Assembly (NCBI GenBank): GCA_964036045.1
Contig: OZ038378.1
Coordinates: forward strand, 77,934,001-77,998,000
DNA length: 64,000 bases
Direction: 5' to 3'
From: Eutreptiella sp. 'Long Island Sound 2002'
Taxonomy: Eukaryota > Protista > Euglenida
The notes beneath the pieces were generated by a model. That model made no database searches and was not told where the DNA came from. It saw nothing but the letters and a program-made list of their open reading frames with translations. This document shows positions 15,511 through 42,292 of this stretch, piece after piece (the stretch's first letter is position 1; every line of letters begins with the position of its first letter). The position numbers were made by a program, and so were the translations under genes.

Positions 15511-15929
15511 GGGTCATTGTTGTTGTCGGCGTGCTCGGCGGACGCGTTGTGGGGTCTTCCTGGGCGCCGTCCTGGCGCTCCTGCTCCATCATGTCCTGTG
15601 TTTGTGTTGCCTGTGTGGTCTTTCTTGTGCGCCATGTATTTGGGCGCTGTGGTGCTGCATGTGTGTGTACATCATGCTGCGTGTTGTTACATGTGCGTGT
15701 GTACCACATACGGGGCGGGCGGATGGCATACCTCTTGCCCCTGGCCTCGGCTTTGGCTTCGATGTCACGTGGGTTCTGCCCTTCCCCTGTAGTGGAGCTT
15801 GTTGGTCTCGGCGCTGTCCTTCCTTTGTGCTGCGCCACTTATTCCAGGCCTTGGGGCCGGTCTGCCATGTGGAACAGCTGTGGCACACAGGGTAGACGTA
15901 GGTGGTGCGCTGCATCGTGCCATGCCGTG

Positions 15930-17380
15930 GTGGGCTGTGCCACGTTGTTTTCGGAGAATTTTGCGGTTGGTTGTGTGGCACTGCGTCGTGTCACGTGTCG
16001 TTGTGTCGTGTTGTGTGGGATTGAGTTTGGTTGTGTGGTGTCGTATGGTTGTGTCATTGTGGTGTGTCGTGGCGCGTTATGTGTTTTGTTGTGTGGTGTC
16101 GGGTGGTGCTGTGTGTTGTCGGGTTGTGTAATGTCGCGTTGTGTGCTGTTTTGTGGCGGTTTGTTGTGTGGTGTAGTATTGTGTTGTGTTGTGTGGTGTT
16201 GTGTGGTTGTTTGTTGGGTTGTGGTGTTCTTTGGTTTGTGTTGTTGTCCTGTATCGCTTGTTGTTGTCGTGTGTCGCCTTGCGGCTCGTTGTGTAGTTGT
16301 TCTGTTGTGTGGTGTGTTGTGGCGTGGTGCGTCGTGTCTGGTTGTGTCCTGGGTGTGGTATGTGGTTGTGTCGGGCATCGGGTTGTGGTACGTGGCCGTG
16401 TTTGCGTTGCGTGCTGTGGTGTGGCGTTGCAGTGTCTCGTGGCAGGTTGCGTTGCGCGTTGGTACCTGGTGGGTGTGTTGTTGCGTTGCGCGGTTTTTCT
16501 CTTTGAGATTTTGGTGCGTTGCGCGTTTTGTGCCGCTGCATTGTGACGTGGTGTTTGGTATTGTGTTTTGTCGCGTGGCGTTGGGTTACGCCATGTTGTG
16601 TCGTGTCGTGCCGTGTCATGTCGTATGGTGTGGTGGCGTGTCGTGTGGCGGTTCGTTGTGATGTGTTGCCTTGTGGTTTGTTGCGTTGTGTTGTATGGTT
16701 ACTCATTGGTTGATTTCGGTGGTTTTTGTTATGTGGCGTTGTTTTGTGGCATGACTCGTTGTCGTGTGCTGTCCAGCGGCGTGTTGTGTAGTTGGTATGT
16801 TGGTTGTGCGTTATTGTTCTGTTTTGCCGTGGTGTTCTATGGCTCTTTCGTTGTGTCGTGTTGTTCTGACCGTTCGTTGCGTGTGTTGTGGTGTTGTGCT
16901 GTGTCCTGTTGTGTTGGGTTGTGTGTTGAAGCGTGGCATTCGGTTGTGCCTTGTTGTGTCATGTGGCGTCGTGTCATGTCACGCGGTATTGTCTGTTGCT
17001 GCTTGGCAGTTCGTTGCGTGGTGTAGTATTATGCGTTGTTGTGTGGCGTTGTTTCGTTGTTCTTTTTGGCGTATTGTGTCGCGTTGGCGGTTCTGTTGTT
17101 TCGAGTCGTGTCCCGTTGTCCCGTGGTGTTGTGTAGTCGGCATGTTGGTTGTGCACCATTGTTGTGTCGTCCGGTGCCGTCGTGTTGTGGTTTGTTGTGT
17201 GGTGTTGCATGGCTCTTTCGTTATGTTGTGGCGGTGCGCGTGTTGTGGTGTTGTGTTGCATCGTGTGGTGTTGTATGGTTGTTTGTTGTGTTTTGGTGTT
17301 GCGTGTTTGTGGGGTAGTTTTGTGTCATGTCTCGTTGCCGTGTGTTGCTTAGCGGCTTGTTGTTTTGGTGGTGTGTTGGT
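15930..17380. repeat. ~1.45 kb degenerate TG/GTT low-complexity tract
   Basis: Almost purely T/G on the plus strand (tgtgttgtggtgtcgt...), with internal higher-order repeats; the Cys/Val-rich ORFs here are artefacts. Confidence 0.92.
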
Positions 17381-17969: not shown

Positions 17970-18715
17970 ATGTGACTGTAGTTCCTGTTTTGGGTGCTAT
18001 ACTCCGTGCGGTCCAGGCTCGGGGTACGCTGGCCTGGTGTGGTACTTGCGGTTCGGTCTGCCGCGCGGGCGCTGTAGTCGGTACGTTGTGATGGGGCGTG
18101 GTCTGGTTCTGGGTCCTCCAGTTGTTGTTGTGCTGTTAGCTCCCCTGTTGCCCTCCCCCCTTCGTTTCCGGTTGTGTCGGCGGTGCTGGGGTAATGGCCC
18201 GTGTGCCATTGGGTCGTTGCATGGGCCGTTTGGGGCTCTCGCCGGTGTGCGCTGTACACCGTGAGGATGGGACTTCGGGTGTGTGAGCCTCGTGCTTGTC
18301 CTCGGCTCCTGTCGCCGGGGCTGCCGCGGTCGTTCGGGTCAGCCGGGTGTTGTCCCCCCTCCCCGATCGTAGTCGTTGTCGGTGTGCTCGGCGTAGGCGT
18401 TGCCGGTTCTCCGTGGGCACCGTCCTTGCGCTCCTGCTCCATCGTGTCCTATGTTTATGTTGGTGTTTCTTGTGCGCCTTGTACTTTGGCGCTGAGGTAC
18501 TGCATGTGCGTGTACCTCATGCTGCGTGTTGTTACATGTGCGTGTGTAATACCTATGGGGTAGCTGCGGTGCATATCTGCTGCCCTTGGCCTCCGCCTTG
18601 GCCTCGGTCTTGTCTGGGTTCTGCCCTTCCCCTGTAGTGGAGCTTGTTTGCCTCGGTGCTGTTCTTCCTTTGCGATGCGGCCCCTAATCCAGGCTTTGGG
18701 GCCTGTCTACCATGT
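17970..18715 (-). repeat. Diverged duplicate of 15134-15870 (LINE 5' region)
   Basis: Direct repeat from ATGTGACTGTAG to CCATGT; both copies translate MEQER(Q/K)DGA...TVYSAHR...TTQWHTGHY. Confidence 0.88.
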
Positions 18716-19234
18716 AAAATTGCGAACCGCTGCCGCGGCCCGAACCACAGCCAAAGCCAAAACCCCAGGCATGCCCATTCTTCACGGTTGCGGAAAGTAA
18801 CACCATGCAACCCAAATGGCCAGATGGCGCAGAAGTACAAGGGGAATTCGGAGCCACACTCGAAGGACGACAAAAACAGTTCGTATGGTTCCGGGGCAGA
18901 ATAAAGTGCAGAATGGCGAGCCTCAGGCCAACATGGAGACCTGCAGCTGAAGATCGCATGGTAAGCGCTCCTGGAGTGAGTGAGAAACCAGAAACTGAGA
19001 CCTTCGAACTCTGGGATGACAGGCCCGGTACAGCTCCGCAGGCCCAACAGCCAAGTGCCACGAGGCACCGTCTGGACCGGTGACGTGCCACGGGCATGGC
19101 TGGAGAAGCGGAATATACCCGAGGAGCAACGGGTGACGACAGGGATCAACCTCAAACCACGCCTGGGGCAATGACTACTACCCCGCCGCGCAAGGGGCCC
19201 CCCAGGGACCGCCAGGGTGCACACCCACGAGGTC

Positions 19235-19915
19235 ATCACCCTCATGTCCCTCAACGAACCAGGCGTCCTGTACGACGCAGCCAAAGGTCTGAACGTGCAA
19301 GACGGACCTGTCATGGCGGGATGTGACCCAGACGCCATGTTGTGGCAGGAACAGGCCCTCAAAACCCACGTGACCCTCCCCAGCCTCACCCCGATCCTCG
19401 CTAGGACAGGGCACCAAAACCGCACCACATGGGTCAAGGGTGACAAGACAAAAGTGAGGGCCAGGGTCATGTCCACCACCACCTGGGCGTCGAAGGCCGC
19501 CTGGCAGCATACGTACTGGTCGGCCCGACTCGGCAGCTAAAGGTCATAAACGTTTTTGTTCCCTTTGGAGACGCCACAGAGTGATTCCTTGAACACCTCA
19601 TGGAGGCCTACCGACGAATCGCCATGATGGGGTCAACTGTCATCATAGGAGACTTCAACGCAGCCCCATCAATGGACTTTCGTGGGGGGCGGCAAACGCC
19701 TAAGGACACAGCGGTGCAAATTGCCATGCAAAACAGGGGCCTACAGGACCTCACAGCCTCCCTATGAGGCCAGCCCTCACACCGACCCCCCCCTACCAGG
19801 CTCAACGGATTCCCGCATTGACCTCTGCTACGCAGACCCGGCACACATCGAGGTAACGCGGGCTGATGCCGCGACTTGCCACCCAAGGCCACTGGACATC
19901 GTCCCCTGGAGGTAC
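19235..19915 (+). pseudogene. Copy B APE endonuclease
   Basis: LWQEQ, IIGDFNAAP, SRIDLCY and TGHRPL motifs across frameshifts. Confidence 0.88.
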
Positions 19916-20058
19916 AAGTCAGGATGCTTCAAGTCCCCCCGGCCTCCACAAAAGAGGGTGACCATGACGAACAACCACCTATCAGGCGACCAGACGAACA
20001 GGATGCACACAGATGGACGGCGTAGGACCAGCAATACAAGAAGAACCTGAACCTCGCC

Positions 20059-21560
20059 ATGCAACAAGCGGCCACGGCATGTGGCCTCCACGGGGGAGAC
20101 CGGTACACACAGGACAATGCCACCCCGCATCAGGACCTGCGATCCATGGTCACCGCCTTATGGCGCAACAAACGGGAACTACATACAGCGATACACTCCC
20201 ATGACCAACAGGCCGGGCAAGATGCCGAGAACATTGCCGCACGAATGGACACCACACGCCGGCAGCTCAGGGAGTGGCACGTCTGCCGGGCGAAGGAGCT
20301 GGCACAAGAACAGCAACACTGCTCTCAGAACCCCAAGCCCTGTAAGTTCTTAAAACACGTGGACAAAGTCCTCGGGCAAACCGGCCAACGGGGTATCAAG
20401 GCGGTGCGTCTGCAGAACGGCACTATGACAAACGACCCCAAGGTGGTCCTGGAAGAAGTCCTCAACAGCTTGCAACGCCAACGGAATACCGAGGACGAGG
20501 AGTTATCTGCGTGCACGGAGGAATGGATATCGCATTTGCCAAAACTCTACAACCGGACACAGCGACGAGACACGCACCGCACCCCGTTCAGCATTTGGAA
20601 ACTGGATGAAGTACTGTACAAACTACAACCACGAAAAACCCTTGGGGTAGACGGCCTCGCAGCGGAGCTCTACTGCAGCCTCCCACTGTACCTGAAGTGG
20701 CACTTGGCCGCGTGCCCATGGGATATCGCCATCGGCAAAACAGACATACCACCGGATGAAGGAAACCTGGTACACCCGCTGTACAAGAAAGGCGACTGGG
20801 CGAACCCAGACCTTGGAAGACAAATAGTGTGCGCCACCAAGGAGGCCAAACTCATCTGGATGCTCATCCTCAAACGTGTGGCCCTGGCAGTATACCGCAC
20901 TGTACCGCCCATGATGTGGGGAGCCATACAGGGTAGGTCGCTGCTGGAGGCCATATTTATGCAAGACTCCGTGGTAGACATCGACCCGATCAGCCTCATC
21001 ATCACGTCCCTGGATGTCAAGGGGGCCTTCCCCAACACCTCGCACCGCCTCCTATGAGCCGTCTGGAAACGCCTGGTAGTCTCCTTTCCGGGTTTCCTAC
21101 ACGCATACCTTGCCACCGGCATGTATGCAGTGAAAACCTATGTGGGCACCAACCCATGGGTCCCTCCCACCAATGAAGTCCGGCAAGGGACTGTGAAGGG
21201 CCCATTTCTCTTCCTGCTCGTCACCCTCCAGCTGGCCTTTTACATCTGACGCACCTATCCGGACGTGGCACCATACCCCCTACTGACCACGCTCCTAGCC
21301 TTTCGACGACGACATGGCGGTGGTAGCCGCCAATGCCCGCCAGCCCTTTGCAACCACCCCGGACACCGCCAGGGCCAGCAAAGTACTCCATGATGTCATA
21401 AACTATTTGGAGGGCAATCTGGTACTGGTGCACAACTTCAAGTCTGCCACTTTGGTGCACAACGCACCACCGCCACCCCTCCGCCCTGGAGACCCGCCCA
21501 TGAACCCAGTAAGAACGGCCACCTACCTGGTAGTCGAACAAGCGGCCAGCAAGAACAAGG
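20059..21560 (+). pseudogene. Copy B linker plus non-LTR reverse transcriptase
   Basis: ORF 20059-21057 (KTLGVDG, PLYKKGDW, SLDVKGAFP); FADD region frameshifted at ~21300. Confidence 0.9.
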
Positions 21561-23199
21561 CCACCCTACCACCTAATCTGCTACAGCAGCTGACCCGAAC
21601 AGTTCTCATTGCACGCATCGTGGCGCTCTCCACCCAGGCCCTGGCATACTTCTCCAAAGGCGTACTCAACGCAGCCAAAGGGTTCCAAGCCCTGCACCTG
21701 AAGCAGCCCCAACAAATGCTGCAGAAGGCCGCTGCCACGGTACAGCAGGCGTGGGCCATCCACGGCCAGCGACGCACGTCACTACCCGCTGCGATGCATG
21801 CTGCGTCACAACCATACTATGGAGACAACACCGATCACCTAGTCCGCAACCCGTACAGGGCTCACACCGCGACCCGCCTGCACCGCCTCCTGCACAACGA
21901 TGAGCAGGACGTGAGGGAAGTATTCACGCTGACACTGCGAGAGGCCCAATATCATTGCAACACCTGTCCCCAGTACATACTTCATGAAAGAGGCCTCCCC
22001 ACCATGGTAGGGACCTGCATATGGAACCAATTACAGCTCCTGCTACCCCATCACCAACATGTCATCCAAACAAACCATCGGTGCAGGGAAACAGGTCCTG
22101 TGGCGATCCTACACACCGATTTGGGTGGTGGACTGACGGGGAGCACCACCACTCTGGACCTGGTGGGTACCACCGTACACCTAGTACGAGTCACACCGAA
22201 CCAGATGCGGGCCCTCCAGCGAGTAGGCACATACCATGTTGCCTTCCTGCAGCACCCAGACTGGTTCAACAAATCAGCCCTGGAAAATCACATGCGAACC
22301 GCGGCCAGACAAACTGGACATTCACAGCCAACCGATGGGGAGGTATGTGAGGTGTACGGTCTGTTTTGGAGCACACACAAACAGCCACAACCGCGAGCCC
22401 CACCGCGCAGGAACCAAGCCCACAACCAACCAATGGAACAGGTGGACTATGCACCGGGCTCCACGGTTCCGGCAGTACTCCTCCTGGCACCCGACCGACT
22501 CAAAACCACATTGCGACCTGCACGGCAACTTGTGGATGCTACCGCCGCCCACAGAACGCAACTTCTGCCCGCCGTCACTGCCACTAGACGCGCCGACAGG
22601 CAGCCCCACCACTTGCTGGAGATGTGGGCCCCAAGCGCTGGCCATTCCATGGCCCCTCCTCCAACTGCTGGCACACTATCACCACACACCAACGGCCGAA
22701 GCTACCCCGGAACGGCACCGATTGCTACATACACACTTCGACCAGGCTTGGGCGGGGGACGCGGCCACTACGGCCTGGGGACCAAACACCACAGCGGAAA
22801 GGAAATTCCACCGTGGAGTGTCGGACACAACACATCCGGCCATTACCTTCCCGGTGCTGGCCAAACACCGCAGTACCACGCCAGAGGCCCCCTCCTCCCC
22901 GGTTAAACACCACTGCTACCAAGTCCAGGACCGGCAGACAATCGAATGGACCACATTTCACCCACAGAAGGCGTACCTGGTCCAATATGTGTGCGTCTAT
23001 CTCACGCAAGGCCACGAAGGGAACAAGGACTATGTAGAAATGATCCCAGCAGCGACCGAGATCATCGACCAGGGAATAGGTGTCTACGCTACCCGAAGGG
23101 TCCAACGAGCCACCACTTTGCCATGGGCCACCACAAAGCAGGGGGTGCAAGTCCACGCCTACCAGCCAAAGGCGCCGTGCCGTCTGCTACCCCAAGATG

Positions 23200-24456
23200 A
23201 CCGCTACACCGTCATCTTTGCGGATGCCTCCGGCACAACGAAGATCACCCCAGTGGCCGGGGGGGCAGCCTCCGAGCTGCGGACGGACACGGCTGGCCAA
23301 CTACGCCAACACCACCTCACGGGCGCCACCATGTTCGGGGCCTCCTCTCACGGAGAACTGAGGAAGCTGGCGATCATCGTGGACGCCATCAATGACACCC
23401 ACCAACAGCCGGAGGACCACACGCACCATCTGTAGGTCGCAGTAGACGCAGCAGTGGACTTCCAGATCGTCCGAAAACTGGCCCGACAGCCCCTACACAA
23501 GGCAACGGACTGCAGCCTGGGCACACAAGCCCTACACCTCTGGGTGGCTTTACGGCACATCCCGAAGCAAGTCATCTTACACCTCATCAAACAAGGGTCC
23601 CATCGGTACAGCCTGGGCAACGGACACATAGACTTACACGCCCACAACCAGCTTGCAGAACATGTGCCAGACGACAAAGACCCTCCGCTGCAAGACCACA
23701 TGCACACACACGTCCAACACCTGCCACCGATCGCACCACCCGGGGAACCAACGGCCTGGGTACCAGACGACCGGATCTCCAACGACACAGGACACGTGTA
23801 CCACTACCCACAACCCATCCGCGCCATGGCGCACATCCGAGGGGACCACGCCGACAACGCCCTTATGAATTGCCTCCAACATGAACTGCAGACCGCGTTA
23901 TACTTCTCAGCTCTTGATCCGTCCTTGCCACCGGTAGACCTACAAACACGACGTGCCCAGCTCCTACTTGAACAACTGCCCCTCCTGGACAGGATGGCAC
24001 GCGTGTATGACCGACGAGGGTATAGACATACCCCCGGAATACACCATATGCCCCTGCCACCTCCAACAGCCAGAGACGTGGGAACACTTCAAACAGTGCC
24101 CGCTGGCTCAGGGAGGCAACCCCCTGGCCACGTGGAAACCGGAGAACACAATTGCACAACACGCCAGATGGGGCCCAACCGCGCCGCCGGCAAAGAAAGT
24201 CCGGCGCCTGATGCGGCAACCAGAAATCAAGGAGGCAGTGCTCAGGGGGCTCCATCTCTACAGGGTAATCGCCGACCACGCCCCGGAACCCAAAACCACA
24301 GTACGTCACATGCAACTCACCGCCGTCAAGAGGGCAGATGCACAGCTGCAGCACCGCGTCCAGCTGTACACACAGGTAGCACAACAGACCTGTCAGGCTG
24401 ACCGTGTGTATTACAACCTCCTCATCCATTACCAGCCAGCGCAATCCAGCGAATAG
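23200..24456 (+). pseudogene. Copy B RNase H plus C-terminal Cys/His finger; pol stop TAG at 24454-24456
   Basis: IFADASG...HGELRKL...VDAAVD...GNGHIDLHA; CPCHLQQPETWEHFKQC. Confidence 0.85.
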
Positions 24457-24589
24457 CCACACCCACTGACACACGGCAACCCCCGGGGGACTGCCACCGC
24501 ACCACCCACCACACTGCACTGCACAAAAGCGCGCACACTCCCAAAAGGTGACTCGATTGTCCCACGACCTGCACCTCTCCTCAGGACGC

Positions 24590-27500
24590 CCGCCGGTGAA
24601 GCCCCACATCCGCAGGGACCAGGGAACCTGTGCAACGTCTGCTAGGAAAGAGTCGGGGACGACGACACCCCGCGCCTTGGGCATGACCTCCGGCTGCGGC
24701 AGCGCCGAAACGATGCACCGGTTCTTCAGCCAGTGCATCGCCCAGCTGCATGCCTGCCCACTTTGCAGACGGGCGCACCCCCTCTGCACAGCCCCGCCGC
24801 CGCGAGAAACCCAACCGACGACCTCACACTCCACACGCTGCGCAGGCTGATTGCCCAGAACGTCTTGGCACCCCCCGATGCTGACCGAGGGGACAGCCCC
24901 GACAGTACGTGGCTGGATGTCCTCGGCAAGAAGGACCTGGCGGCACCGCCGGCCCGCCCCCCCTGGCGCACCAACGTGGATGCTGCTGGACGGGGAGGAA
25001 GACCCCAAGGTCTGAGTTGAGACCACGAACATTACGGGGGTGTGCAACGGGGCAGCCTGCCCCCCGTCGGCAATCTGCCGGACAGTTGGGGCCCCATGGG
25101 CCCCATGAACCTTGAAAAGTGGGGCGCTACCATCCTCACCCTTACCACCCGCCTCCCCTTCACCTTCTGCTGGCTGCCGAGGGACGCGGAATGGGCCATT
25201 GGGATCGCTCGCGGCGCCCATGTCCATGAGTGGGGGGAGTTTTTCTGCAGCAGCGGGGGCATGACCGAGGGGGCACCCGAGAGGCTGATGGCAGCCTATC
25301 TAACGTTGAGGGGGATACCGGTCCCCGAAAGACTCGTGCCAGTGGCGCGTCGCGCCCGCCAACCACTCGTCCCAGCGCCGCAGCCGGGCACGTACGGCAA
25401 TGCAGCAGTGGCTCGAATGACGGCCGGGGGTGTTCGACACCACAGTTCCTCCACCTCCACCCCGAGAGTCGCGACCATCAGCACCCAGCCCTGGCCGCGC
25501 ACCACGGCCGCAACGAGGCCCAAAAGTGTACACGCTCCGGCGCCACCTACAGCGGTGGGAAGCATGCCCAGCCACACGAATATGGCAACAACAAGCGCGC
25601 GGCCCGAGCAACCCCTCGGCACCATGCGCCCACAAATGAGCCTAGGCCCGGGCCCCGCCGGCGACCCGGGTCCACAACCTCAAACGCGAACCAACGCGTC
25701 CACACGCGGCCAGCAGCCAGCGGCCCCGACACAGGCCGACCCGGGGCTTGACCCCCACCACAACCCACCAGTTCGACCGACGGCAAGCCCCACACAAACT
25801 CCATCTGACGGCCCCCCCACGCAAACACCAAGACCGACCTCCACACAGACGCGTACCGCTACCCCGCCATACGCCACCATGCGCCCCCATGCCCACATCC
25901 CCACCGGGTGACCGAGTGCCCAGGCTCCAGCGGCACCGTGCAAGTCGACCCAAGGGTACCATCCACCAGCCCCAGCGCAGGCCGAACCGGCGCCCCATCA
26001 ACGCCAAGACCCACCGGCCAGACCGGCAGTACGGCCCACGGAAGCGCCGCCTGGCAGTCCCCCGGCCCCCACCAGGACCCGGACCCGGACCCGGCGCGCG
26101 CCACCGTCCCGGCCTACGCCCTGCAGGCGAACACGCCAGGCCACAGGCTCACGACGGTGGTCCCGCATCCCGAGGGCGGGACACCGGCAGCTCGGCCCGC
26201 CACGGCGGAGGGGAGTGGTGGAACGCGAACACTGGCAGGCCAAAAGGGAAGCCCCCCGAGGCCGGCACCCGTACGAGTTGGCCAAACCCGTGCGGCGACG
26301 CCAACAAAAGACGGCGCAGCCACGCCACCAGCACTGCCAGCCCAGCCACATCACTAGGAGCCCACAGTGGACACGGGTGCTGGGGCATCGGAGGATGCGG
26401 AGGGACGCCCTCAGTGGAAAAAGGCAGCGGTGCCAGCGCCGACCTATACACCCGGGGACCGCCCAGAGCGGAGATACCTGGCGCGATGACGGGCAAGCCG
26501 GGCAGCCAGCACGCCAGCAAGCCAGCCAATCACCAGCCGGACATGATGGCACGTGAAAGCAACGAAGCACCAGACACTGCCCAACCCGGTACGGGACCTG
26601 GGGGACCGACGCCGGGGGCCAGGCATGACGACGACCCCCCCCCCTCTGCCCGTGCACGAGGCGCAGACCACGGGTCATGCAGGTGCCGTTCCATCCACGG
26701 CCCCAGCAAGCCGCAGTGACACGAGCACGCAAGGGGATGCAACGTCCGGGGAGGCACGGACCCAGGGCCCACCTCAAGCGCACGCGGAGTGCAACACCCG
26801 GGTGACGTCTCCGGACACACCCAAGCGCGCAACTGACCGGGGGCCGTCGTCCGGCAGACACAACCGCAACAACGACTCTTTCGACGCCTCCATGGCGTCC
26901 TGCAGGAGCGCCCGCCCAAACAAACCCAGCGCCGACTGCTTCATGCAGCCACCTGAAGCCACGGGGCGACCATACAGAGCCTGCACAGGAACCCCCGAGG
27001 GATTCCCTCGCGGAGTCCCGGCAGGCACACCTCCAGCGCGGTTACACCGCCCTGGGGGTGAGGACTGAATACACCGTTGCCACGGATGACGCGCACGCGA
27101 CCGCAAGCGAGCTAGCGGACAAGACCCCGGACGAGCCCCCCTGGCACCTCGCCCAAGGGAGCGGAACGTGTGTGGAGACGGGTACCAACACCGCTAGCGA
27201 GCCTGCCGGCCAGCCACCGCGGGCCACCCCAGCCTGGGGGCGGGGGTATCTGGACTACGCGCGGTCGGAAGGCAGCGCCCGCCGCCCCAACACCCACGCG
27301 GAACAGGCGGCGGCCCAAGGGCTGGACCTCTGGATCACCAGGATCACCGTAGGGGAGCGGCACGCCCTCGGAGTCAGCATCCGACGTTTGTCTCAGGAGC
27401 TACTCCGCCTCCAGGATGGAATCTGCACCATGGCAGACGTTGCCTTCGGCCATTGGGCAGCACCGCACACAACCCCGACCGCCATGGACCACCCTAGTCG

Positions 27501-30072
27501 GTGGCACTATGTGGCCTCGCGGCTCATGGCACATATGCGGACCTATGGCGCAGATGAAATGAACAGTCTACACTGGCGCCCGCATGAACGCGCGGCACTC
27601 CGCGTCCGTGCAACCATGCAAAGGCACAACATCTGGGCCATCCCAGGGTCCCCGGGCTCCCCGGGACACGCCTTCGGACACAGGCGACCACGGTACCAAG
27701 AGGTGCCGGAGCCCTCAAGGCAAATGGCACGCCATGACTCCCCAAGACGCCACCAGGGGCCACCTCCCGGTGTGGATTCCCCCTCCAGCACACACGGAAG
27801 CCCCCTCAGACCATTCGCACCTCGGTGGGACCGAGGCAGCCCTCATGCCACGGGGATGAAGGGTGGGACCTCCGCCTTGCGGACCCCAGACCGGCGAGAA
27901 GAAGCGAGGAACCCTGGCCGATTCCGGCGCCGCAGCCGCACGCCACCCCCCGCGGCGCGGCGAGTCGTCTTCCACGAGGGTGCCGTGGAGGCCTCAACGA
28001 CCCGCCTGCCAAACAGACATCACCTACCGCTGATGCCCGGCGCCGGTCCTAGAGGGCCCGCACCGAGCAGACGCACATCCCCACCGTTCCCACGCCGGCC
28101 CAGCGAGCGCGATAGGCAGCGCTCCACAGGTGCCTCCACCAGGCAACAGACGGTGCATCCAGCTCGTCCGTTGCCTCCCTCCCAGCAGCACCGGCAAGTC
28201 CGCCACCGGGGGGATGGCACACAGCGGAGGCACGGCCAAGGGGACCAGCAGCAGACCAGCAACCCAGACACAGGATGGGGGCAAGGACATATCAAAGCCT
28301 CCCCCCCCCGCACCGGCCCACCGACCAACCGGTCCAATGCGCAACGGGGCTCCGCACCCTGGCTGTGACGCAGCCAAGTTGGGGGGACGCGGAGGACGCA
28401 CCACAACAGCGGGGACGCGACGCAGGCGACCCGGGAGCGGGCCAAGAAATGACAGAGGCCTCCGGCCCTCAGGAGTCCGGTGGCCCCCGGCCCACCACCG
28501 TCTCCCATCCGATGTCCCCGCAACAAGAGCCCTCCACAGGCAGCGTACCTGAGGAACACCCTGACACCACTGCAGGGCACCCCTGTCCAAATGGCGGCAC
28601 ACCGGACGGGGACAAGGAGACCATGCCCCCCCCACCCTCCAGACCACTACAACGGAGGGACACAGACCGCCTTTACAGGGAGGAACTGAAGGAAATCTAC
28701 GACATCCACGCCAACACACCCCTGTGCGGGCTGGTGGCCGCCCCCTGGAGACGCCTCCAGGACATCAACCCAAACAGCCTCTTTGCCCCCGTCCTCGTGC
28801 CGCACGCCGGATCGACCAACATCTCCGTGCGGCAGCTCGTGGCACTCGTCACCCCCGGGATGCAGCTCGCAGACGACCTCGTCGACGCGTGGATCTGGTG
28901 GTTCAACTTCAACAAACCGGACCAGGAACACGTGTGGGTCCCGCACCTGGGCTGGGTGCACACACACATTGCGCCGCCGACAGAGCCCAGGCCCGCGCCA
29001 AGCACCGGGGGCCGGGAACTGGCCGCCCGACAACCGAGGGCTAACGCCCCCAACATCCCACCGTACAATGGTCTGGCGGGCCAGAAAAGCAGGTCTGCCC
29101 CCGACAGGGGGCGCAACCTCAGGGACATGGTGGAGGGATACCCACCAGGGGCGGAGACGGCACCCGCGGGACTCCCAGGACGCGAAGATGAGGCCCGCAC
29201 CATCTCCATGATTGTGTTGGAATGTGGCCACTATCACCAGGTGTGGATCACCCGGGACCCACAGGAGTGCCAGTGGAACCTGGAAGCCTTCGACTCCATG
29301 CACCCAGCAAGCGCAGCCCTGCCGGACGGCCCCAACCCCCTGCCGCAAAACCAGCCCCCGGACCCCCTGACGGCTGTCGTGTCGGGTGAAGCCGGCAGCT
29401 GGCACCCAGGGCATGCCCTCTACCGCCTCTGGCGTTCAGTTCAGCGCCGCTGCTCGCACACCAAGGAGTGGTCGGCGACGTGGAGATTCCACCTGGACGG
29501 CCGCGAGCAACTGGAGGCCATCCCCCAACGCGAGCGAACGACGGAGAGCCCTTGCTACAGGAAACCTGTGCCCCGTCTTAGCAATCCACCAGATCCGGGC
29601 ACTGGTGCTGGGCGGACAACTGCTGCCCACCATCGGCATTGAGACGGAAGCCCGAGCAGCGCACACAGCCCTTGTGCACGAGATCATCAGCGCTCTCGGC
29701 AGCGCCCTTGTGCGGCGTCTGGGGAACCACCCAGGGGCCTATCCCACCACGAGCCTAAACCGGGAACACGCCCCCATGAACATGCGAGGCGACACCATCG
29801 CCACCAGCGCACCAACACGGCACACGCATGCCTTGCCCGCTGCGACCGGCCACCGGCAGTGGAAGGGAACCACACCGGCGGCTATCCGCACCCTCCCCCC
29901 TTCAGTCGCGGCGATCGGCCGGAGGACCCTCGAAGAACCGGAGATGCACTGCGACCGATATGAGACGACACACCGCGGCGCAACTGTAGCACGGTCCCCA
30001 CGCCGACCACCCGCTGATGAGGAGACAACCAGGCACCATTGGGACCGCCTCACCCCACCCGAGGCTCCCTAG
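24590..30072 (+). pseudogene. Copy B ORF3: RING-like finger (24631-24769), unknown domains, Ulp1/C48-like protease (28821-29640)
   Basis: ORFs 24733-25020, 25042-25911, 27058-28368, 28275-29642 and 29386-30072; conserved with copy A; His/Asp/Gln/Cys protease residues recoverable. Confidence 0.78.
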
Positions 30073-31110
30073 TTGGGCGTCAAACGAGCGGCTGAGGGAC
30101 CAGCCATAAGCCGCAACGACCCCGGGCAGGCCAACCATGCCCAGGGCAGCGCATCCCGCCGACAACTGTTGATCGGGTGCACCGGCGAGAGATACAATGG
30201 GTTACCCGACTTCTGCCGCAGGCGCCCGCCAATGCGGCCCTACAACCCGTGCTCTACAGCATGGACACTAACCCGATGACCACACCGAGCCCATTCCACC
30301 CACGTATCACGGACGGGAACCACGCTCCCCACCCCCTCGAAATCCATCAGTGTCAAGGAACGGGAAGGAGCCCCCGACACAGACCCATCTTTCCACCTGA
30401 CCGCCATTTCTCACAAGCCAGACACGAGGTGGACCAAGGAGTGCAGCCCAACACACGAGACCCAAGGGCCCGCCGGCCCCCGCCGGCGGACACCGGAATA
30501 TTACGCCGAGCCCCTTTGGGATTCCCCGACGTCAGAGCACATAATCCTCAAGAATGTTACTTCGAAGGGCAGGGGGTCAAGGGAACACCAGAGGCGACAC
30601 GCATGACCTCCACCATTACCTTACCATTACGCAACAAACCAACTAAAATTGACAGACTGCACCGAACCCCCGGCCCCCCGGGAGAGCGCAAGCCCAACCA
30701 AGTCAGGAGGCGTGAGCACGCGTCACAGCATGTGAGTCCCGTAGCACGTGCTTCTTCAAGTCATCTCACGCCTACTGAAAACCAATCCAGTCGGGGGTGC
30801 CTGCAGGGCAGGGCCTTTGACCTAGCTCCGGGCCCCTGGGCCCCAGAATGGGGAGGTTGATGAGGATATGCGATTGGACCCTCCCCCACGTATCATCCGC
30901 CCGAAGGAGAGGAATGTGAGACTTCGGTTGAACATGGGTTACCTCTCTGGGCAGAACCCGCAGTAGGGTACTGCTCGCGGCGACCGCGCGCTTCCTCCAT
31001 GTGGGGGACCCGTTTTCTGGGGGCACGTGAAGTAGGGCCGTGGGTGGGTGAGCAAAAGCCCCTTGGTAAGACCCCCCTGAGGGGCAACCCCAGTCCCGAG
31101 AAGACCTATC

Positions 31111-31134
31111 TACCTACCTACCTACCTACCTACC
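31111..31134 (+). repeat. (TACC)6 microsatellite tail marking the LINE 3' end
   Basis: Directly visible. The homologous stub at 62626-63020 also terminates in (TACC)3 at the same point. Confidence 0.9.
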
Positions 31135-31136
31135 TC

Positions 31137-31600: not shown

Positions 31601-33990
31601 TTGTGGAGGGCGAAAGAAGCTAGGGGCGACTGATCCCCGCCCTGAAGTCCCCCTGAGTGGGCACATTGAGCACAAGTCTGTCAGTTCGTCAGTACGTCCC
31701 TTGCTCGCTTGCTCTCTCCCAGCTCCGGTGCAACGTCGTTCAGGTGGAGTGGTTGATATGCTGCGCAAGTCGAGCCGCCCCCTAATCGGGTGGTTTTACA
31801 CAGCAGTTGCGTGTCGCCCAGACCTCAGCGCAATGCCAACCTCCCGAACCCGAGTTCCGCAGACCCAATTCTGCTCCCTCTGACTCCGAGTCATAGCGGC
31901 TGACAGCCTCCCCCCTGCTGAATCTACGGGAAACCAGGTAGTACCTCCTTCCATGACGAGACCACAATCCCGAGAAGATGGCCACAAGCGTGAACGCTGA
32001 AGAGGGTCCCTACCAGGACCGGCCCCTGCTGTACCCCTTCCACCATTTCCTGTCACTCCTATGGTCTTGCGTCTCACCAGGTTCTGCATGATCTTGCCCT
32101 ATCCTGCACAATTTCTAACAAAAAATAGTAAAATATGGCTCCTGCACACACATCCTGATCCTTTGCAATAACCAACTCCCAAGTACAATAGCTCCAATCC
32201 AAATTAATCCACACTGAGGGCTTCCAGGGGTGTTTGAGGTCCCGTGTTGACACTCAACCACTCCTTTCAACACGCCGGTCGTCTCACGGTGCACACGGAG
32301 ACACGGGCGTTGGCCATGTACATAGAATTGCACCAATAGAATAATAAAAAAAAGCCCTGAAATTGGCATATGAACACAAATCAAGCAAAGGTGGGGAAAG
32401 ATGGAAACATACACAATCACAGCCATAGACCCCTCATTCCCTGGACTCAGGACCTTCCCTTGACTCGCCAACTTGATGCCCTGAACCAAGTCAAATAAGA
32501 TGGCTAAATGCCATGTGTCAAAAGTCACTACACAAACCCCAAAAATGTGTTCACACCCAAGCCTCTAAATCCTAGCCCAATAGGAAAGGTGGCGTATCAT
32601 GGCCTAGAGTGGCACTCAGGACCATGCCCTACCCTGACATAACTTTGGGTGGACTTGGAATCGATTGGGCTTGGAGAATTGCCCCGTGAAGATGACCTCA
32701 CAACATAGCAAAATTAGGCAAATCACACCATAGTGCCCAAAAATCAATTATATACTCAAAAATGCATACGGCAAATGTTCGAATGCTCCATGCATGTGTC
32801 AAACCCGAGAGTAATATACAAGGGTGATATAGAACAAAGGTCGATGCCCAAGAATATTCAACATTGGCTCCCAAACCCCTCCAGATATACACATGCCATG
32901 CTTCACAAGTCAACTCATGAATTTGAGACCTAATTTTGTGAGGCCTCGTGTGCCACGCCAGAGTGACCACGTGATCCGGCATATGGTGAGGTGCAACACC
33001 GAGGCATATGCCAACATATAAGCAACATACCATAGTTCACAGATCTCTAGGCACCTTACTGTTAGCTGACCAGTTGAGCACAAAAAATACAAAAATGAGC
33101 ATAAAATGAGGTCAAAAACATGCAAATATTGCCAAATTCAAAGTAATCACAATAGTATATAACTTCGCTCACCCATGGTATCAACATATGGTTCAACACA
33201 CTTTTGCTTGGGACCATTCGCCAAAAATCCTCCCACTTGGATCTCCACATGGATGCATAGGGACACCTTCGAACCTCGTCACGACGCGCACCATTAAAAT
33301 CGGAAAATTGATAATGGCGCTTGTGGATCGCTCCGTAAGCCTTCCCACATGCACTATATGTGCGGTAGACTTAGTCTAGCGCTATGCAGCACACCATTGG
33401 GACATGGGCGAAGCCCTTGCCACGTATGACTCAACATATCGTCCTACAAAGGGAGATATATAACATGAGCGTGAGCATGGCGAAGCACATACCATGCATG
33501 TAACACGTACCCTCAAAAAGTGGCTCCCACCATGCTATGCCATGCCCCTCCATGGACATAACTTCACGTTAAAAATACGTAGGAGCCCAAGGAAAGTTTC
33601 TATGCAACACCAACACTCATGCAGTACACTCGAAAGCCGCATTCAAATGTTTGGTTGCATGGTCCAAGAGTTAGAAATCACTTTCTACCCTCTTGACCAT
33701 TATCCCTTGCTACATCTGCCATGTGTACACATCAAAGGGGTTTGACGCTCCTTGAATTGAGGTGAGACCAAGGCAATTCCAGCCCATATCTCAAAATTGA
33801 AGTTACTCGCGGTGAGCTGGAGATATGACCTTTCAAAGTGGCCTCACGAATCAATTTTGTTTCGCCTATATCCCCAAGAAAAATGAAGGAGACAACAAAA
33901 AGAAGGTTGATTCGTGATCGGGGAAAAATGACGGACCACTCGAAATACATCATATCCAGTGTGCCCACCTCGAAGTCGAAAACCCGATTC

Positions 33991-34443
33991 TGAATGTCTG
34001 AAAAAATCGGATTAATTTTGCGAGTGTATAACATGAAAAATTGCGGAAGCAACGAACTCTTTACTGATGAAATCTGACTCTTCACTGGGGTTTCCGCTAA
34101 AATATCTGGAAATAACAGTTAGCCAATCCGTTACCGCAAAATCGCGAGCCAACTGACAGCCGCCGATACATTGACAATCAGAACGGATAGCTGAAAAATT
34201 ACGGGAACATTATGATAAAAAAACCCTGTTGATTCCTGACATTCTGATATATGAATCTCAGCCGGCGCGCCTCGGCATTGAATATGGCCGCTCATAGCTG
34301 GAATGGCCAAGCCTATCACACTATCACATCAGGTTAGGTCAGGTGAATGGGACAGTATGATATCAGCCAATGGCGGCTTGCCGGCACATAGATACACACC
34401 CCAAGTGACCCAAAGATGGCCACCGGGGTCCGAACCTGCTTCA
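33991..34443 (-). repeat. Gypsy-1 3' LTR (453 bp shared core, TG...CA)
   Basis: Roughly 94-95 percent identical by eye to 42293-42745; minus strand starts TGAAGC. Confidence 0.9.
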
Positions 34444-34454
34444 CCCCCCTTCTC
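34444..34454 (-). promoter_or_regulatory. Polypurine tract GAGAAGGGGGG
   Basis: Abuts the TG start of the 3' LTR on the minus strand. Confidence 0.85.
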
Positions 34455-34837
34455 AGAGCGTTGTATCCGCTCGGAAGTTATTGAAGAGAGGACCGGAGGA
34501 CCCCAATGGGCTCCAACCCCAACCCCCCATGTCCCAAGGACACATGGAGGCCCCACATACGGTGTAGGCGTCCCCCATGCTCCAAGGGAGGGGTGAGGAC
34601 ACTCATAATCGGTGCCCTCCGCCAAATCCGGTCTCCTCTTGATCTACAACATGGACCAAGGGGATCAAAGATAGAGAAACGTCGTCGGTTGACCTAAATT
34701 CGTATACCACAATGAAATATTTATGTGGAGACCGAGTGAAGTGGGTATATGGCCAATCAAGGCCCAAAAGTCCCCGGATGAACGCCCTCACCCATCTCCA
34801 AAACACAAAGACAAACATAAATGCCAAGGGGGATCCA

Positions 34838-36409
34838 TTACGGTGCTGCTGCAGCCACCAAATGGACCAACACGTCCTTGACATCCAAGGAAATGTTCTT
34901 TTTCCTTAGATAATCCACCCAGACCGTGGTATACCTCGGCACAAAACTGCTCAGAGGCTCCCACGAATCCCTGGATGCGGCAAATCCCTTCCAACGGACT
35001 TTATAAAGCCTCCCCCCAGGCGTCCCTGGGTCTGGCCTGTCCGTCAGGATCTTCTCGGCGGTGAATTCGTCGTCCTCACCCTCGTCATCCGAGTCCACAC
35101 CGCCGGCTGTGAAGTCGAAGGTGACGGGACGTCCGCTGGGGTTTGGTGCTCGGGGACGAAGCTGGGTGTGGTCGCGGTCAAGGATCTTGTTATCCCCCAC
35201 ACGAACGGCATACACATCCTGCCCGACCTTCCGAACGATTACCCCCAGCACATACCAAGACGCCTGCCGATGCCTGGACAGGACATCCTTGTGGCGCCGC
35301 TCCACCCATACCGTGTCTCTGAGAGCATATTTCTGGACTTTTCCCTGCTTGAAGTACTTGGCCCTCTTCTCATGCTCGTCCTGAAGTGCTTTGCACACCT
35401 TGGCCGCCGTGTCGTCCGCCTCAGCCATCATAACACTCGCATCCCGGGCCACTTTGCCATGGTTCAACCACGGAAGAGTGCGTGACACTCGATCCCGTAG
35501 GAGCAGATTGCGATGGGGCGACAGTCCAGTGGGCCCCGGAAGGTCCCGGTACGCCTGGAGTACTCTCCACAGCGAATTGTACCAATTACGGCACGGTTTG
35601 TCAATGTGCATCTGGCGGAACCTTTCCAACATCTGCCGCCCGGCCACCTCAGCCCAGCCATTCGACCGGCTATGGTACGCCACGGTCTTGGCTTGCCGAA
35701 TCCCCATGTGCTTGCACATCGTCTTGAACCACGTCCCCACAAATTGACTGCCCCAATCGCTGCAGATGACAGCTGGGACATCAAAAATCGTCAGCCAATG
35801 CCTGATCGTGGCATTAGCGACGGTCTTGGCCTGCAGACCCACTCCTTGCTTGTCCTTCTTGTCCTTCTTCTTGGACTTCTTGCCAGGGACCGCCACAATA
35901 TACCCGCCGTGCCTATCCACCGCCAAGATGACACAGTCGTAGGTCTCTCCTTCCACGGTGACCTCAGGCATGGCGAATACATCCATGGCCACGGACCGCA
36001 TAGGGGCCTCCGGTATAGTCATATACACCGGGTTGCCCGCTGTGGAATTGTTGGGGCTTTTCGTGGCCCGACACACGACGCAGTCGCTGCAGTACTTGTC
36101 CAGGATGGCGTAGTAACCCGGTGGGAACTTGAAGCGCCACTCCAGGTCCTGCTGCATGTTGTCCCGACCAGGATGCATGAGCTGGGCATTATGCCAGTGG
36201 TCAATGAGCTCCTCCATTTGGTTCTCAGGAACCAATGGCTTGTCCTTGAGGAAGAATTTATCTCCATCCTCGGTCAAGCTCTCAGGCCATTCGTCGTCCG
36301 ATGGGGCGCTCACGGCATTCCAGTACCTGCTCCAGTGGTCGGATGCCGCATAGTCATCCGACCAGTCCTCTGGTAGCACCGACCTGACTAGCTCTACGGG
36401 GGCCACCAT
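34838..36409 (-). CDS. Gypsy-1 integrase plus chromodomain (open 523 aa segment of pol)
   Basis: HHCC (H...HPG...CVVC), D (AMDVF), D (SDWGSQF), E (WAEV); chromodomain EFTAEKIL...YKVRWKGF...DSWEP. Confidence 0.95.
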   Translation of the reverse strand: MVAPVELVRSVLPEDWSDDYAASDHWSRYWNAVSAPSDDEWPESLTEDGDKFFLKDKPLVPENQMEELIDHWHNAQLMHPGRDNMQQDLEWRFKFPPGYYAILDKYCSDCVVCRATKSPNNSTAGNPVYMTIPEAPMRSVAMDVFAMPEVTVEGETYDCVILAVDRHGGYIVAVPGKKSKKKDKKDKQGVGLQAKTVANATIRHWLTIFDVPAVICSDWGSQFVGTWFKTMCKHMGIRQAKTVAYHSRSNGWAEVAGRQMLERFRQMHIDKPCRNWYNSLWRVLQAYRDLPGPTGLSPHRNLLLRDRVSRTLPWLNHGKVARDASVMMAEADDTAAKVCKALQDEHEKRAKYFKQGKVQKYALRDTVWVERRHKDVLSRHRQASWYVLGVIVRKVGQDVYAVRVGDNKILDRDHTQLRPRAPNPSGRPVTFDFTAGGVDSDDEGEDDEFTAEKILTDRPDPGTPGGRLYKVRWKGFAASRDSWEPLSSFVPRYTTVWVDYLRKKNISLDVKDVLVHLVAAAAP

Positions 36410-39221
36410 GCATTGCTCGAGGGTTTCCTCTCAAATAGCTTGGACTCCGGCGCCCCGGAACTTGGCCAGGTCTGTACGGTTTGCCGTCACCACAAAGCGC
36501 TTGACCCCCTCTTGCTCCATGGCCTTCTCCATCTCGATTTGCTTTTTGCACTGAACGGCGCCTGCTGATGGCTGGCCACGCCGCCTTCTCCATCTCGATG
36601 ATGCGCTTGGCCTCCTCGGTCTCCTCGGTGTCCCCATGGCTGGATATGTCCATCCATGGCTTGCCCGCGGGGTAGGCCCAGCGACTGAGGCAATCCGCCA
36701 CAGTGTTGTCCTTCCCCGGGACGTACACGACGCTGAGGTCGAACTTGGCGAACGTCTCATGCCATCGGGCCCTCCTTGCCGCCGGTTCCGAGGGGGTGTC
36801 GACGTGCTCCTTGTGCCAGCTCTGTACCGACTGATGGTCCATACTAACCACCACCAGTGGTAATCCGATGTGGCCAGACCACTTCCTGAGCGCACAAACA
36901 ATGGCGTACGTCTCCTTCTCCCTCGCGATCCAGGTTCGACGTTGGCCCTCGGCGAGGATCCGGCTCCAAAACGCCACGGGTACGTGCGACCCGTCATCCC
37001 GGACCTGCTCGAGGACTACCCCTACAGCAGAGTCCGGGGCGTCCGTCCGTAGCACAAATCCGTTGTCCGGGTCCACCAGGAATAGCCCCAGCTGCCCCAG
37101 GAGTTGCTCCTTCAGGCGGCTGAACGCATCTTCGGCCTCAAGGGTCCAGGCAAGCTTCTTCTTGCTCCCCTTCCGGCCATCGAACTTGCCCACCTGCAGC
37201 ATCTTGTGCAACGGCTCCGACAGTTCTGCATACATCCGGACATAGCCCGAATAGTAATTGCAGAACCCCATGAAGGATCGGAGTTCGCTGATGGTCTGGG
37301 GCTTCTCCCAGTGGTGCAGGGACGCCAGCTTCCCAGGCATGGGACGGCGTTGCCCGTGACCAACCACGTGACCCGCGAACTCCACTTCCCTCACGAAGAG
37401 TGAGGCTTTGGTGGGCTTGCACACCATGTTGTGCTTGTCCAGCTCGCTGAGCACTCGGCGCAGATCCTTCTGATGCGCTTCGATGAGCTCGTCCTCAGTC
37501 ATGTCTTCCGTGCCGGACCCGATGATGATGTCATCCACAAAGGGGTCGGCACAGTCCCGGACAGGACCGAGTATGTCCTCCATCATGCGCTGGAAAGCGG
37601 CGTTGCCATTCTTGGCGCCCATAGGCACCACTTTCCACTGCATGGGCCCCAGCGGCGTGGACATGGCTGTGCAGGGCCTGGAGTCCGGGTTCAGCGGCAT
37701 CTGGTGATAGCCGTGTTTCAGGTCTAACACCGTGAAGATCCACTTTTTTTGTTGTTTTTGGAGGATGGTGTCGATCAGAGGAAGGGAGTACGAGTCGTGC
37801 TTGGTTTGCTCGTTCAAACCTCTGTAATTCACCACCAACCTCCACTCGCCCTTCTCTTTCTTGGGCACGATAAAGGCTGGGCTGGCCCACTCACTGTCGG
37901 AGGGTTCGATCCAGCCCCGCTCAATAAACTCGCCCAACAACTTCTTCATCGCCTCGGCTCGATTGCCCTGAAGTTGGTACTCCCGATGACGATAGATCTT
38001 GGGGTTTGGCTTCAGCTTGATCCTCGCTGTGCCAAACCTCCCACGATCTGGAGGGTTCTTGTTGGCGACGCCACTGAAAAGCTGCGGATAGGCATTTATC
38101 AGCCTCTCCTTCAGCTCGGCGACCTTCGGGTTCTCCCAGGCCTCTTCAGCCGCTTGCTTCGGTATCGATACAACGGACCGCACTGCGGTATAGGCCTTAT
38201 CCGGGTCCGAGTCCGACTTCTCCTCGTCCGATATGCCACCTCCATCGTCGTGGGGTGCACTTCGCACCGATAATCTTCGGAAATTTGCGGCATCAGCCGG
38301 GTTGTTGTCGCTACCGGCCCCCATTCTTGGAAAATCCCACGTCGGCGGGTCCAACCTAACCAGACCATCATATTGTTCCGCGATGTGATCCATGACCCTC
38401 GCCACGAACTCATCCCTCTCGTACTTGCCGGTGACCAACATCTTGTCATCCCACCAATGCAGAGATGTGACCATGGCCCGCCTCTTCTTGGCTGCCACAC
38501 GGTCAGCTTGCACCGCTTGGACGATCCGATCCTCCTCCTCAGCATTCCATGGACATGATCCGCATGCATAGTCCGTGGACAGCCATGTAACACATTCATT
38601 ATCCTCCCAGACCAGCGTTGCACGATGGGGAAGGGATTCAGTGAAGTCATACCCCATGATCATATCCCGATCTGTAATGGCGGCCACATAGAAGTTCCCG
38701 GATAGAGTGCTTCTCTTTGCCATATCAGGGCGGTTCAAGCGCTCATGCTCCCAGAATTCCATACTGCTAGTGGCCTCATGGGTGCCACCACCCATAATCT
38801 CTCCATTGGCCACCTTCAGGCGTACCGGTCTACGGCTGGGCTGCAGGGATTCCTCCTTGAACAACCCTCTCCGGACCAGGCTCACCTGGGCACCCGTATC
38901 CACCAAAACATCCACAACCAACTCCTCTTGTCCGCACCGTACACGCACCTTCAAGTGCAACTGCCGCTTGTCACCATGCGGTGTATGGACAACTCTCACG
39001 GCATGCAACTCTAGCACATCCGGGTGCATCAGGACTTCCAGAGTATGGTCACGGATGGTGTAGATCCTGGGCTGGTCCTGCCCGTCCATGGGGCTCTCCG
39101 TGGTGGCTCGTTCTTTCTTGCCACGTCCCTTGCCCACATACACTTTCCTTGGTAGGGCGCTCCAGGGGTTGGGAGTGGCGAAGCTCAGTGGTTTCGGCTC
39201 TTCTGGAGCCTTCTTTGGCAC
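36354..39221 (-). pseudogene. pol: Gypsy-1 pol: aspartic protease, RT, RNase H; frameshifted near 36540-36600
   Basis: VLVDTGAQ; WASPAFIVPKK, LDLKHGYHQ, FVDD; RTDA...EKETYAI...DNTVADCLSR. Confidence 0.95.
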
Positions 39222-39302
39222 CCGATGTGCCTTCGCTTTTTCTAGGATTCCACTGGATTTCGGAGGAGAGGCCTCCGGGGTCCCACTCCCGTGAGGGCTC
39301 CT

Positions 39303-42283: not shown

Positions 42284-42292
42284 TAAAGATTC

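Follow-up and report, generated by a model that had tools for sequence, protein, structure and literature searches.

Long interspersed nuclear elements (LINEs) are regarded as minimal, consisting of open reading frame (ORF) 1, pol, and a short untranslated region (UTR), with known accessory domains that are small and located in ORF1 or fused to pol. A 64,000-nucleotide (nt) stretch of Eutreptiella sp. 'Long Island Sound 2002' (GCA_964036045.1, OZ038378.1, positions 77,934,001-77,998,000, forward strand; hereafter the window) raises the question of whether a LINE can carry a further gene of its own, and what such a gene might encode. In two inverted LINE copies within the window, A and B, the pol stop is followed in another frame by the same succession of parts, in which a RING-like finger and a W-rich block come first, then a Pro/Thr-rich linker, and finally a helical block and a C-terminal domain, with the 3' UTR and tail coming only afterwards, as the preliminary description of this locus had reported. 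Comparison with related loci (L001-L006 and L009), a sister family (L008), and family ORFs (P numbers) shows that this region, here called ORF3, travels with pol when the element is copied by target-primed reverse transcription, and that its folded domains were kept by purifying selection during the diversification of the family. The LINE architecture is real and unusual, and the biochemical identity of the ORF3 cargo is partly established.

Self-comparison of the window revealed copies A and B as an inverted pair with 82-85% identity across ~11 kb, and stop-to-stop translation placed the end of pol at a stop codon in each, 24454-24456 for copy A and 4906-4904 for copy B. The coordinates of ORF3 and its parts in the window were mapped from the near-intact relative L009. 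The two copies and their matching segments are as follows:

~18731-31135, plus strand: copy A, delimited by self-comparison
18731-24456, plus strand: pol of copy A, decayed, with an apurinic/apyrimidinic endonuclease (APE), a reverse transcriptase (RT), an RNase H-like region, and, at the C-terminus, a Cys/His knuckle; aligns with 10670-4904 of copy B, and with L003 412-6146 at 77%
24457-24585, plus strand: spacer of copy A, from the pol stop to the ORF3 start position, the ATG being lost
24586-29742, plus strand: ORF3 of copy A, decayed, the stop position (29740-29742) being lost
29743-31103, plus strand: 3' UTR of copy A, beginning only after ORF3
31104-31135, plus strand: (ACCT)n tail and end of the element in copy A, read directly
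1-10670, minus strand: copy B, delimited by self-comparison, the element continuing upstream and its 3' UTR lying beyond the window start
4904-10670, minus strand: pol of copy B, with a weak Pfam Exo_endo_phos match at 10419-9601
6-4774, minus strand: ORF3 of copy B, decayed, with the start equivalent at 4774 and an intact stop at 8-6
7-1361 against 29741-28362: inverted match, 83.3%
1362-3548 against 27747-25559: inverted match, 82.3%
3814-10670 against 25545-18731: inverted match, 84.9%

Both copies are long dead. Relative to L009, copy A carries 16 frame-breaking indels (12 private) and copy B carries 20 (16 private), and the four that they have in common all lie in spacer or low-complexity linker. 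Because so few lesions are shared, their decay is largely complementary and fits an intact common ancestor, in agreement with the preliminary description. The two ORF3 regions differ by 252 nt in the Pro/Thr/Ala linker, and ~614 nt of the second linker are missing in B. Substitutions between A and B are spread evenly over codon positions, RT included, without a third-position excess anywhere, and their divergence (~15%) is neutral decay. Since codon periodicity is lacking between A and B even in pol, the ratio of nonsynonymous to synonymous substitutions (dN/dS) of this pair is uninformative, and other copies were needed to assess constraint.

The least damaged ORF3 is that of L009 (13353-18398), which spans 1,682 codons in a single frame with 3 stops and no frameshift, its ATG at 13353 lying ~115 nt past the pol stop in a different frame. 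Across these 5,046 nt the other five frames contain 18-30 stops, and shuffled sequences average 25.5 and never have fewer than 12; chance does not account for the open frame. The ORF3 region measures ~5.05-5.16 kb in length, somewhat shorter than the ~5.5 kb given in the preliminary description. In L004, the initial 3.2 kb of ORF3 remain in one frame with 2 stops, and in L004 (16186-17694), P0245, and L009 a single frame runs on from the helical block into the C-terminal domain; ORF3 is one gene, not two. A separate ORF4, suggested by recurrent C-terminal ORFs of ~427 residues, was rejected because the domain is in frame with upstream parts in these same three sequences, and the recurrent length reflects the first ATG available after lesions in a Met-poor linker.

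In each of the six recovered copies that have the 3' end of pol (A, B, L003, L004, L006, and L009), ORF3 comes next. L001, L002, L004, and L005 are 5'-truncated at differing points, at the end of pol or inside ORF3, and all reach the same 3' UTR and tail; the (ACCT)n tail also terminates L001, L002, L003, L005, and L009. In addition, L002 is bounded by a target-site duplication (TSD) of 11 nt with one mismatch, TCTCAATAGCG and TCTCAATAACG, exactly at both junctions. The truncated copies with a common 3' end, together with this TSD, indicate that ORF3 belongs to the LINE RNA and is reverse-transcribed and inserted with it, which bears out the earlier proposal that it is integral to the element. 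In the DNA contigs of public run X2 of the organism, the whole stretch is covered at a depth in the thousands, and ORF3 is at about the same order as the end of pol. The sister LINE family L008 (51% RT identity; L008 9818-17980) possesses pol and no relative of ORF3, suggesting that ORF3 is a lineage-specific acquisition.

Selection was assessed by the Nei-Gojobori method with bootstrap for the pair L004-L003 and for L009 paired with L004, L006, L005, A, and B. The dN/dS values were 0.19-0.37 for the RING, 0.36-0.44 for the W-rich domain, 0.24-0.46 for the pre-helical and helical parts (helical, 0.33-0.46), and 0.31-0.51 for the C-terminal domain, alongside 0.14-0.35 for pol, all with confidence intervals below 1; the exception was the pre-helical part in one pair, with 0.64 (0.41-1.01). 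Values for the Pro/Thr linker (0.64-0.80) and for pseudo-frames in the 3' UTR (0.80-0.96) had confidence intervals that include 1. A third-position excess between lineages was likewise present in pol and the folded parts of ORF3 and absent from the UTR and the Pro/Thr linker, which has no codon periodicity. Because part of each distance stems from post-insertion decay, true constraint is stronger than these values suggest. Furthermore, the divergent lineage L005 has lost most of its similarity at the DNA level and retains ~45-50% amino-acid identity in ORF3 (~45% in the helical domain). The comparison of copies proposed in the preliminary description, which yielded nothing for A against B, thus succeeded with the other copies, and ORF3, open in one frame in L009, departs from neutrality in its folded parts.

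The family to which ORF3 belongs is an APE-type retrotransposon lacking long terminal repeats (non-LTR), that is, a LINE, as seen from its APE, its RT, a common 3' end with a repeat tail, 5' truncation, and a TSD. Pfam identified an APE endonuclease N-terminal to RT (Exo_endo_phos, E=1.4e-6, 28.6 bits, cut-off 24.5; L003 725-1675) and RT itself (RVT_1, E=1.3e-17; L003 2023-3711). The RT of copy A is decayed and reaches only E=0.065 with RVT_1, the sole match in a Pfam search with pieces of the window. For RNase H, Pfam gave no match on the relatives, and an Asp/Glu/Asp/His/Asp-like pattern was read by eye only (L003 4166-5293 and 5241-6146). Only ~115 residues follow the C-terminal Cys/His knuckle of pol, and no PD-(D/E)xK motif was read there by eye. 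The pol of L009 occupies one frame with 5 stops in 5.3 kb, and this near-complete copy measures 14.4 kb without its 5' part, which puts the full length of the element at probably 17 kb or more.

The domains of ORF3, with the corresponding residues of L009 ORF3, occupy the following positions in copy A:

24631-24766, plus strand: RING-like zinc finger (residues 15-59), split by frameshifts in A, and with the first Cys pair missing in B
25013-25420, plus strand: W-rich domain (residues ~142-280), conserved in 149 family ORFs
25421-26876, plus strand: Pro/Thr/Ala-rich linker of variable length, Pro 20% (residues ~317-783)
26877-27650, plus strand: pre-helical and helical domain (residues ~773-1016)
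27651-28670, plus strand: second linker, Pro/Arg/Ser-rich, in frame with both neighbours (residues 1024-1325)
28671-29742, plus strand: C-terminal domain, candidate clan-CE (Ulp1/C48-like) thiol protease (residues 1332-1682)
near 29226, plus strand: candidate catalytic His (residue ~1514)
near 29292, plus strand: candidate catalytic Asp (residue ~1536)
near 29569, plus strand: candidate catalytic Cys (residue ~1626)

The finger contains eight ligands in C3HC4 order, C-x2-C-x17-C-x6-H-x2-C-x2-C-x6-C-x2-C in L009, with the same arrangement in P0128, P0157, and P0161. Among Pfam models, zf-RING_5 matched at E=0.023 (15.1 bits against a cut-off of 27.9), and Sina_RING, zf-RING_5, zf-C3HC4_3, and zf-RING_2 matched the same stretch at E values of 0.06-0.18. 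The closest neighbour of the finger in the PDB is the RING of BARD1 (E ~1.2), and the top named clusters by Atlas language-model features are all RING (0.90). These features make it quite probable that the finger is a divergent RING, and the RING-like finger of the preliminary description can be retained as plausible, its Pfam matches being sub-threshold. The W-rich domain has no match in Pfam or the PDB, and the helical domain has no family match in Pfam and none in sequence and profile searches of the PDB.

The C-terminal domain was matched in 290 family ORFs by protein search, 51 of which span the whole core. In the comparison of Atlas language-model features, residues 75-427 of the intact copy P0021 scored 0.95 against their first match (186 of 256 features in common), and of the 40 named matches 36 belonged to Peptidase_C48 (PF02902) clusters; the decayed window copy gave 0.91-0.92. 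Likeness in such features is a lead, not a defining feature of C48. By eye, the alignment displays an N-terminal helix motif and a hydrophobic strand, a hairpin with a His followed by Asp-Ser, and a Cys starting a helix, an order that we read as that of clan CE. The candidate Cys is retained in A, B, and the divergent L005, and an alternative His lies 14 residues further on. We lean slightly towards a C48-like domain and do not assign it as a member of C48.

In a HMMER profile scan of 1.84 billion representative proteins, 201 were found, all of them fragments of this LINE family (10 of 10 checked from the European Nucleotide Archive, ENA). All nine family loci taken from ENA come from a single assembly, ERZ25074135, and the only trace outside it is L007 (JGI sample 3300040806), a contig of 3,299 nt with an open pol piece of 858 residues that is 96% identical to L003. 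Two scans of JGI metagenome contigs and one of viral contigs found no relative of the ORF3 parts.

The reading that we propose is that the region belongs to an unusually long APE-type LINE, of which it represents the 3' half, and that the family encodes after pol a single accessory protein of ~1,680 residues, selected and co-mobilised, in which a RING is combined with a C-terminal domain (~350 residues) that is probably a clan-CE (Ulp1-like) cysteine protease. The long Pro/Thr linker would be disordered. Such a protein may act on ubiquitin/SUMO-type conjugation. Its RING would then be an E3-like module, its C-terminal domain would be a deconjugase, and the targets would be proteins of the host or of the element itself; the element could benefit through favoured retrotransposition or blunted host control. 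Translation of the downstream ORF3 might proceed by reinitiation, by a frameshift from pol, or from a separate transcript. Taken as a whole, this reading could well be right and could equally well prove wrong. Its most specific form, a dedicated LINE effector pairing an E3-like RING with a SUMO/ubiquitin deconjugase and rewriting the host marks that drive silencing or ribonucleoprotein (RNP) turnover, appears doubtful; if true, ORF3 would be the first self-encoded counter-defence gene of such a kind in a non-LTR retrotransposon.

Several results weigh against this proposal. The usual gap between the third Cys and the His of a RING is 1-3 residues, and the x6 spacing seen here is atypical; all Pfam RING matches fall under the curated cut-offs. 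In the C-terminal domain, column conservation among copies is flat and uniformly high, so that the candidate catalytic residues are not distinguished. Pfam gave no match to Peptidase_C48 (PF02902) at E<=1 on intact copies or at E<=10 in 150 members, phmmer and hmmsearch of the PDB with this domain gave 0 matches at E<=10, and hhalign of the family profile against the bacterial clan-CE enzyme ElaD of E. coli (NC_000913) returned a probability of 0.08. The AlphaFold check advised in the preliminary description could be carried out, and the predicted local distance difference test score (pLDDT) rose from 30.5 with 18 sequences to 58.3 with 150; the resulting model is poor to mediocre, and the putative catalytic core is badly predicted, with pLDDT <50 over most of the second half. 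Fold searches with this poorly modelled core found nothing in the PDB at E<=0.001 (Foldseek), a best Z of 4.9 in a VIA-wide search, and a best template modelling (TM) score of 0.25 in the Atlas shape search, none of them a credible match. The Ulp1-like protease named in the preliminary description is accordingly not established, the language-model features being the one search that points to Peptidase_C48. In addition, no homologue of ORF3 occurs beyond one assembly in the collections scanned, so that deep comparative support is absent, no recovered copy has a fully intact ORF3, the RNA-labelled runs of the species, which are tiny, contain no contigs on the stretch, and the function attributed to ORF3 is entirely one that we infer.

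The same failures of every homology and fold search for C48 would be expected if the C-terminal domain were no protease and ORF3 were a lineage-specific scaffold or nucleic-acid-binding protein, similar in role to ORF1 and placed downstream, with a finger that binds zinc for RNA or protein contacts. The lack of relatives of the family among the 1.84 billion representative proteins is consistent with such a scaffold, as is the lack of an upstream ORF1-like region in the short-form copies A and L003. However, copies B and L006 do have an upstream coding-like region, the Atlas comparison (0.95, 186 shared features, 36 of 40 named matches in Peptidase_C48) points to a protease, and the His-bearing strand, the Asp-Ser, the Cys at a helix N-terminus, and the N-terminal helix motif fit clan CE in our reading; a scaffold is thus rather unlikely. 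If the domain is a protease, it might instead work in cis, cutting ORF3 or a pol-ORF3 fusion at the linkers and releasing the RING/W-rich and helical modules for RNP assembly or integration, with no editing of ubiquitin/SUMO marks on the host. Clan-CE proteases include viral polyprotein-processing enzymes, which lends this idea some appeal, and the folded modules, all under selection, are separated by two long, putatively disordered linkers. In some copies (P0157; L004 9506-9994) the open frame of ORF3 reaches back upstream as far as the end of pol. Yet no cleavage sites were identified, the identity of the protease is itself unproven, and RING fingers are far commoner as E3 modules than as structural parts of RNPs, and we regard action in cis as unlikely.

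A more radical alternative would deny ORF3 any function and treat it as a passenger, acquired either from the host by transduction or through an old insertion nested in the element, so that its open frames would be mere remnants. A passenger would explain that both copies in the window are so badly damaged, that an intact full-length ORF3 was not recovered, and that the sister family does without one. This alternative is strongly disfavoured and very improbable, because several lineage pairs give dN/dS values far under 1 for four separate domains and close to 1 for the linker and UTR, because ORF3 of L009 is nearly as clean as its pol (3 stops per 5.0 kb against 5 per 5.3 kb), and because ~45-50% amino-acid identity persists in a lineage with largely diverged DNA.

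To our knowledge, LINEs of the I group end shortly after pol. The family described here adds ~5 kb of further coding sequence and a UTR of 1.4-3.5 kb, although it resembles the APE-RT-RNase H LINEs of that group (I, Ingi, Nimb, Loa, R1, Tad1, and Outcast; PMC4640811) in its APE, RT, RNase H-like region, C-terminal Cys/His knuckle, simple-repeat tail, and 5' truncation. Other transposable elements are already known to carry proteases of the ubiquitin/SUMO type (PMC4640811, PMC2836005, PMC8557442). Among non-LTR retrotransposons, NeSL and Utopia-1_TSP encode an Ulp1-like cysteine protease (PMC4640811) and are comparable as LINE-class elements with an Ulp1-type protease domain besides RT, the C48 identity being unproven in the present case. 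However, NeSL and Utopia have a restriction-like endonuclease and a single ORF with the protease N-terminal, upstream of RT (PMC4640811), whereas here the APE is N-terminal in pol and the protease-like domain forms the C-terminus of a separate post-pol ORF that also bears a RING. According to the accounts of Kojima and Fujiwara (2005) given in PMC8557442 and PMC9977147, the Dualen/RandI LINEs of green algae carry a Josephin-like cysteine protease; as described there, they have APE, RT, and RNase H together with a deubiquitinase-type thiol protease, which was proposed to interfere with protein degradation. They are comparable in this to our family with its RNase H-like region and candidate protease, but are defined by possessing both an APE and a restriction-like endonuclease. 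The domain found here points to C48 rather than Josephin, and the giant ORF that holds it is separate from pol, lies downstream of it, and also encodes a RING.

Outside the LINEs, Chlamys-1_cBra, a Penelope-like element of Chara braunii, has a Josephin-like protease in a C-terminal extension (PMC8557442). What makes this green-lineage retroelement comparable is its long C-terminal extension, where a weak deubiquitinase-type protease motif is paired with a second conserved Cys/His motif, but it is a Penelope-like element with GIY-YIG, and its extension is fused to the RT ORF, shows weak Josephin homology, and is far shorter. Ulp1 or OTU domains also occur in Ginger1, Mutator-like elements, and Helitrons, for which an involvement of the ubiquitin pathway in transposition was suggested (PMC2836005). 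These too are transposable elements with ubiquitin/SUMO-type protease domains; however, they are cut-and-paste or rolling-circle DNA elements, with the protease fused or adjacent to the transposase and no RING partner described. The literature surveyed, with Repbase and Dfam outside its scope, describes neither an APE-type LINE whose pol is followed by a giant, separate ORF nor one in which a RING is combined with an Ulp1-like domain; it is possible that the layout has already been catalogued in Repbase or Dfam.

The 5' part of the element varies among copies. Copy B (window 10670-15870, minus strand) and L006 (1475-4330) have in common ~2.6 kb of coding-like sequence upstream of APE at 81% identity. 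This region is not present in A, L003, and L009, the homology of which starts within ~100 nt of one point, and positions 17970-18715 of copy A (plus strand) match 15134-15870 of copy B instead. The element may exist in a long and a short 5' form; alternatively, a region bearing ORF1 may have been deleted from A. In Pfam searches for OTU and ORF1, the upstream coding-like region gave no match, and the OTU that the preliminary description had considered was not found, this 5' region included.

At the other end, the last ~460 nt of the UTR (30663-31103) are 90% identical to L001, L002, L003, and L009 and 83% identical to the divergent L005. Coding parts are 73-77% identical between the same subfamilies, making the UTR end the best-conserved part of the family, and it is probably a recognition module for RT. 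A weaker copy of this module (81%) occurs at 62993-62625 of the window, perhaps as a solo 3' fragment or a SINE-like derivative (SINE, short interspersed nuclear element). The UTR of the L003/L009 subfamily is ~2.2 kb longer than that of copy A (L003 11279-14387; L009 18402-21500), and within it lie internal tandem repeats together with an incomplete second copy of the C-terminal domain's end. The L008 element ends, after ~1.5 kb of Pro-rich sequence, in (AGGT)n, the reverse complement of (ACCT)n. A 1,091-residue 'ORF' downstream in L008 was rejected as a gene, being a translated GC-rich satellite. Similarly, positions 1-4300 of L005 consist of a GC-rich (~75%) satellite with a unit of ~210 nt, which adjoins the 5'-truncated copy and yields long spurious ORF calls.

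The remainder of the window gives it the overall character of a transposon graveyard. Between the heads of the inverted copies, positions 16000-17320 are low-complexity, strand-skewed, and G/T-rich (C/A-rich on the minus strand), with short tandem units. A near-intact Ty3/Gypsy chromovirus occupies 33970-42750 on the minus strand, with LTRs at 33986-34443 and 42288-42745 that are 94.6% identical and ORFs of 926 residues (no Pfam match), 955 residues (protease, RT, and RNase H), and 523 residues (integrase and chromodomain); additional LTR-like copies are found at 63523-64000. At 46162-47485 there is a tandem array, GC-rich (~71%), whose units recur about every 205-210 nt and are 86-87% alike.

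Collectively, this LINE family devotes ~5 kb, about the size of pol, to a separate downstream gene that has been kept through subfamily diversification and hundreds of copies, and ORF3 must be translated downstream on a eukaryotic LINE RNA. Should the biochemical guess prove wrong, the gene would still hold three selected domains for which no relative is detectable among 1.8-5.8 billion proteins. If its RING and protease-like ends act on ubiquitin or SUMO, the family would offer a tractable retrotransposon with its own host-manipulation factor, and would then connect with the old conjecture that the Ulp1, OTU, and Josephin domains found in transposons counter host control.

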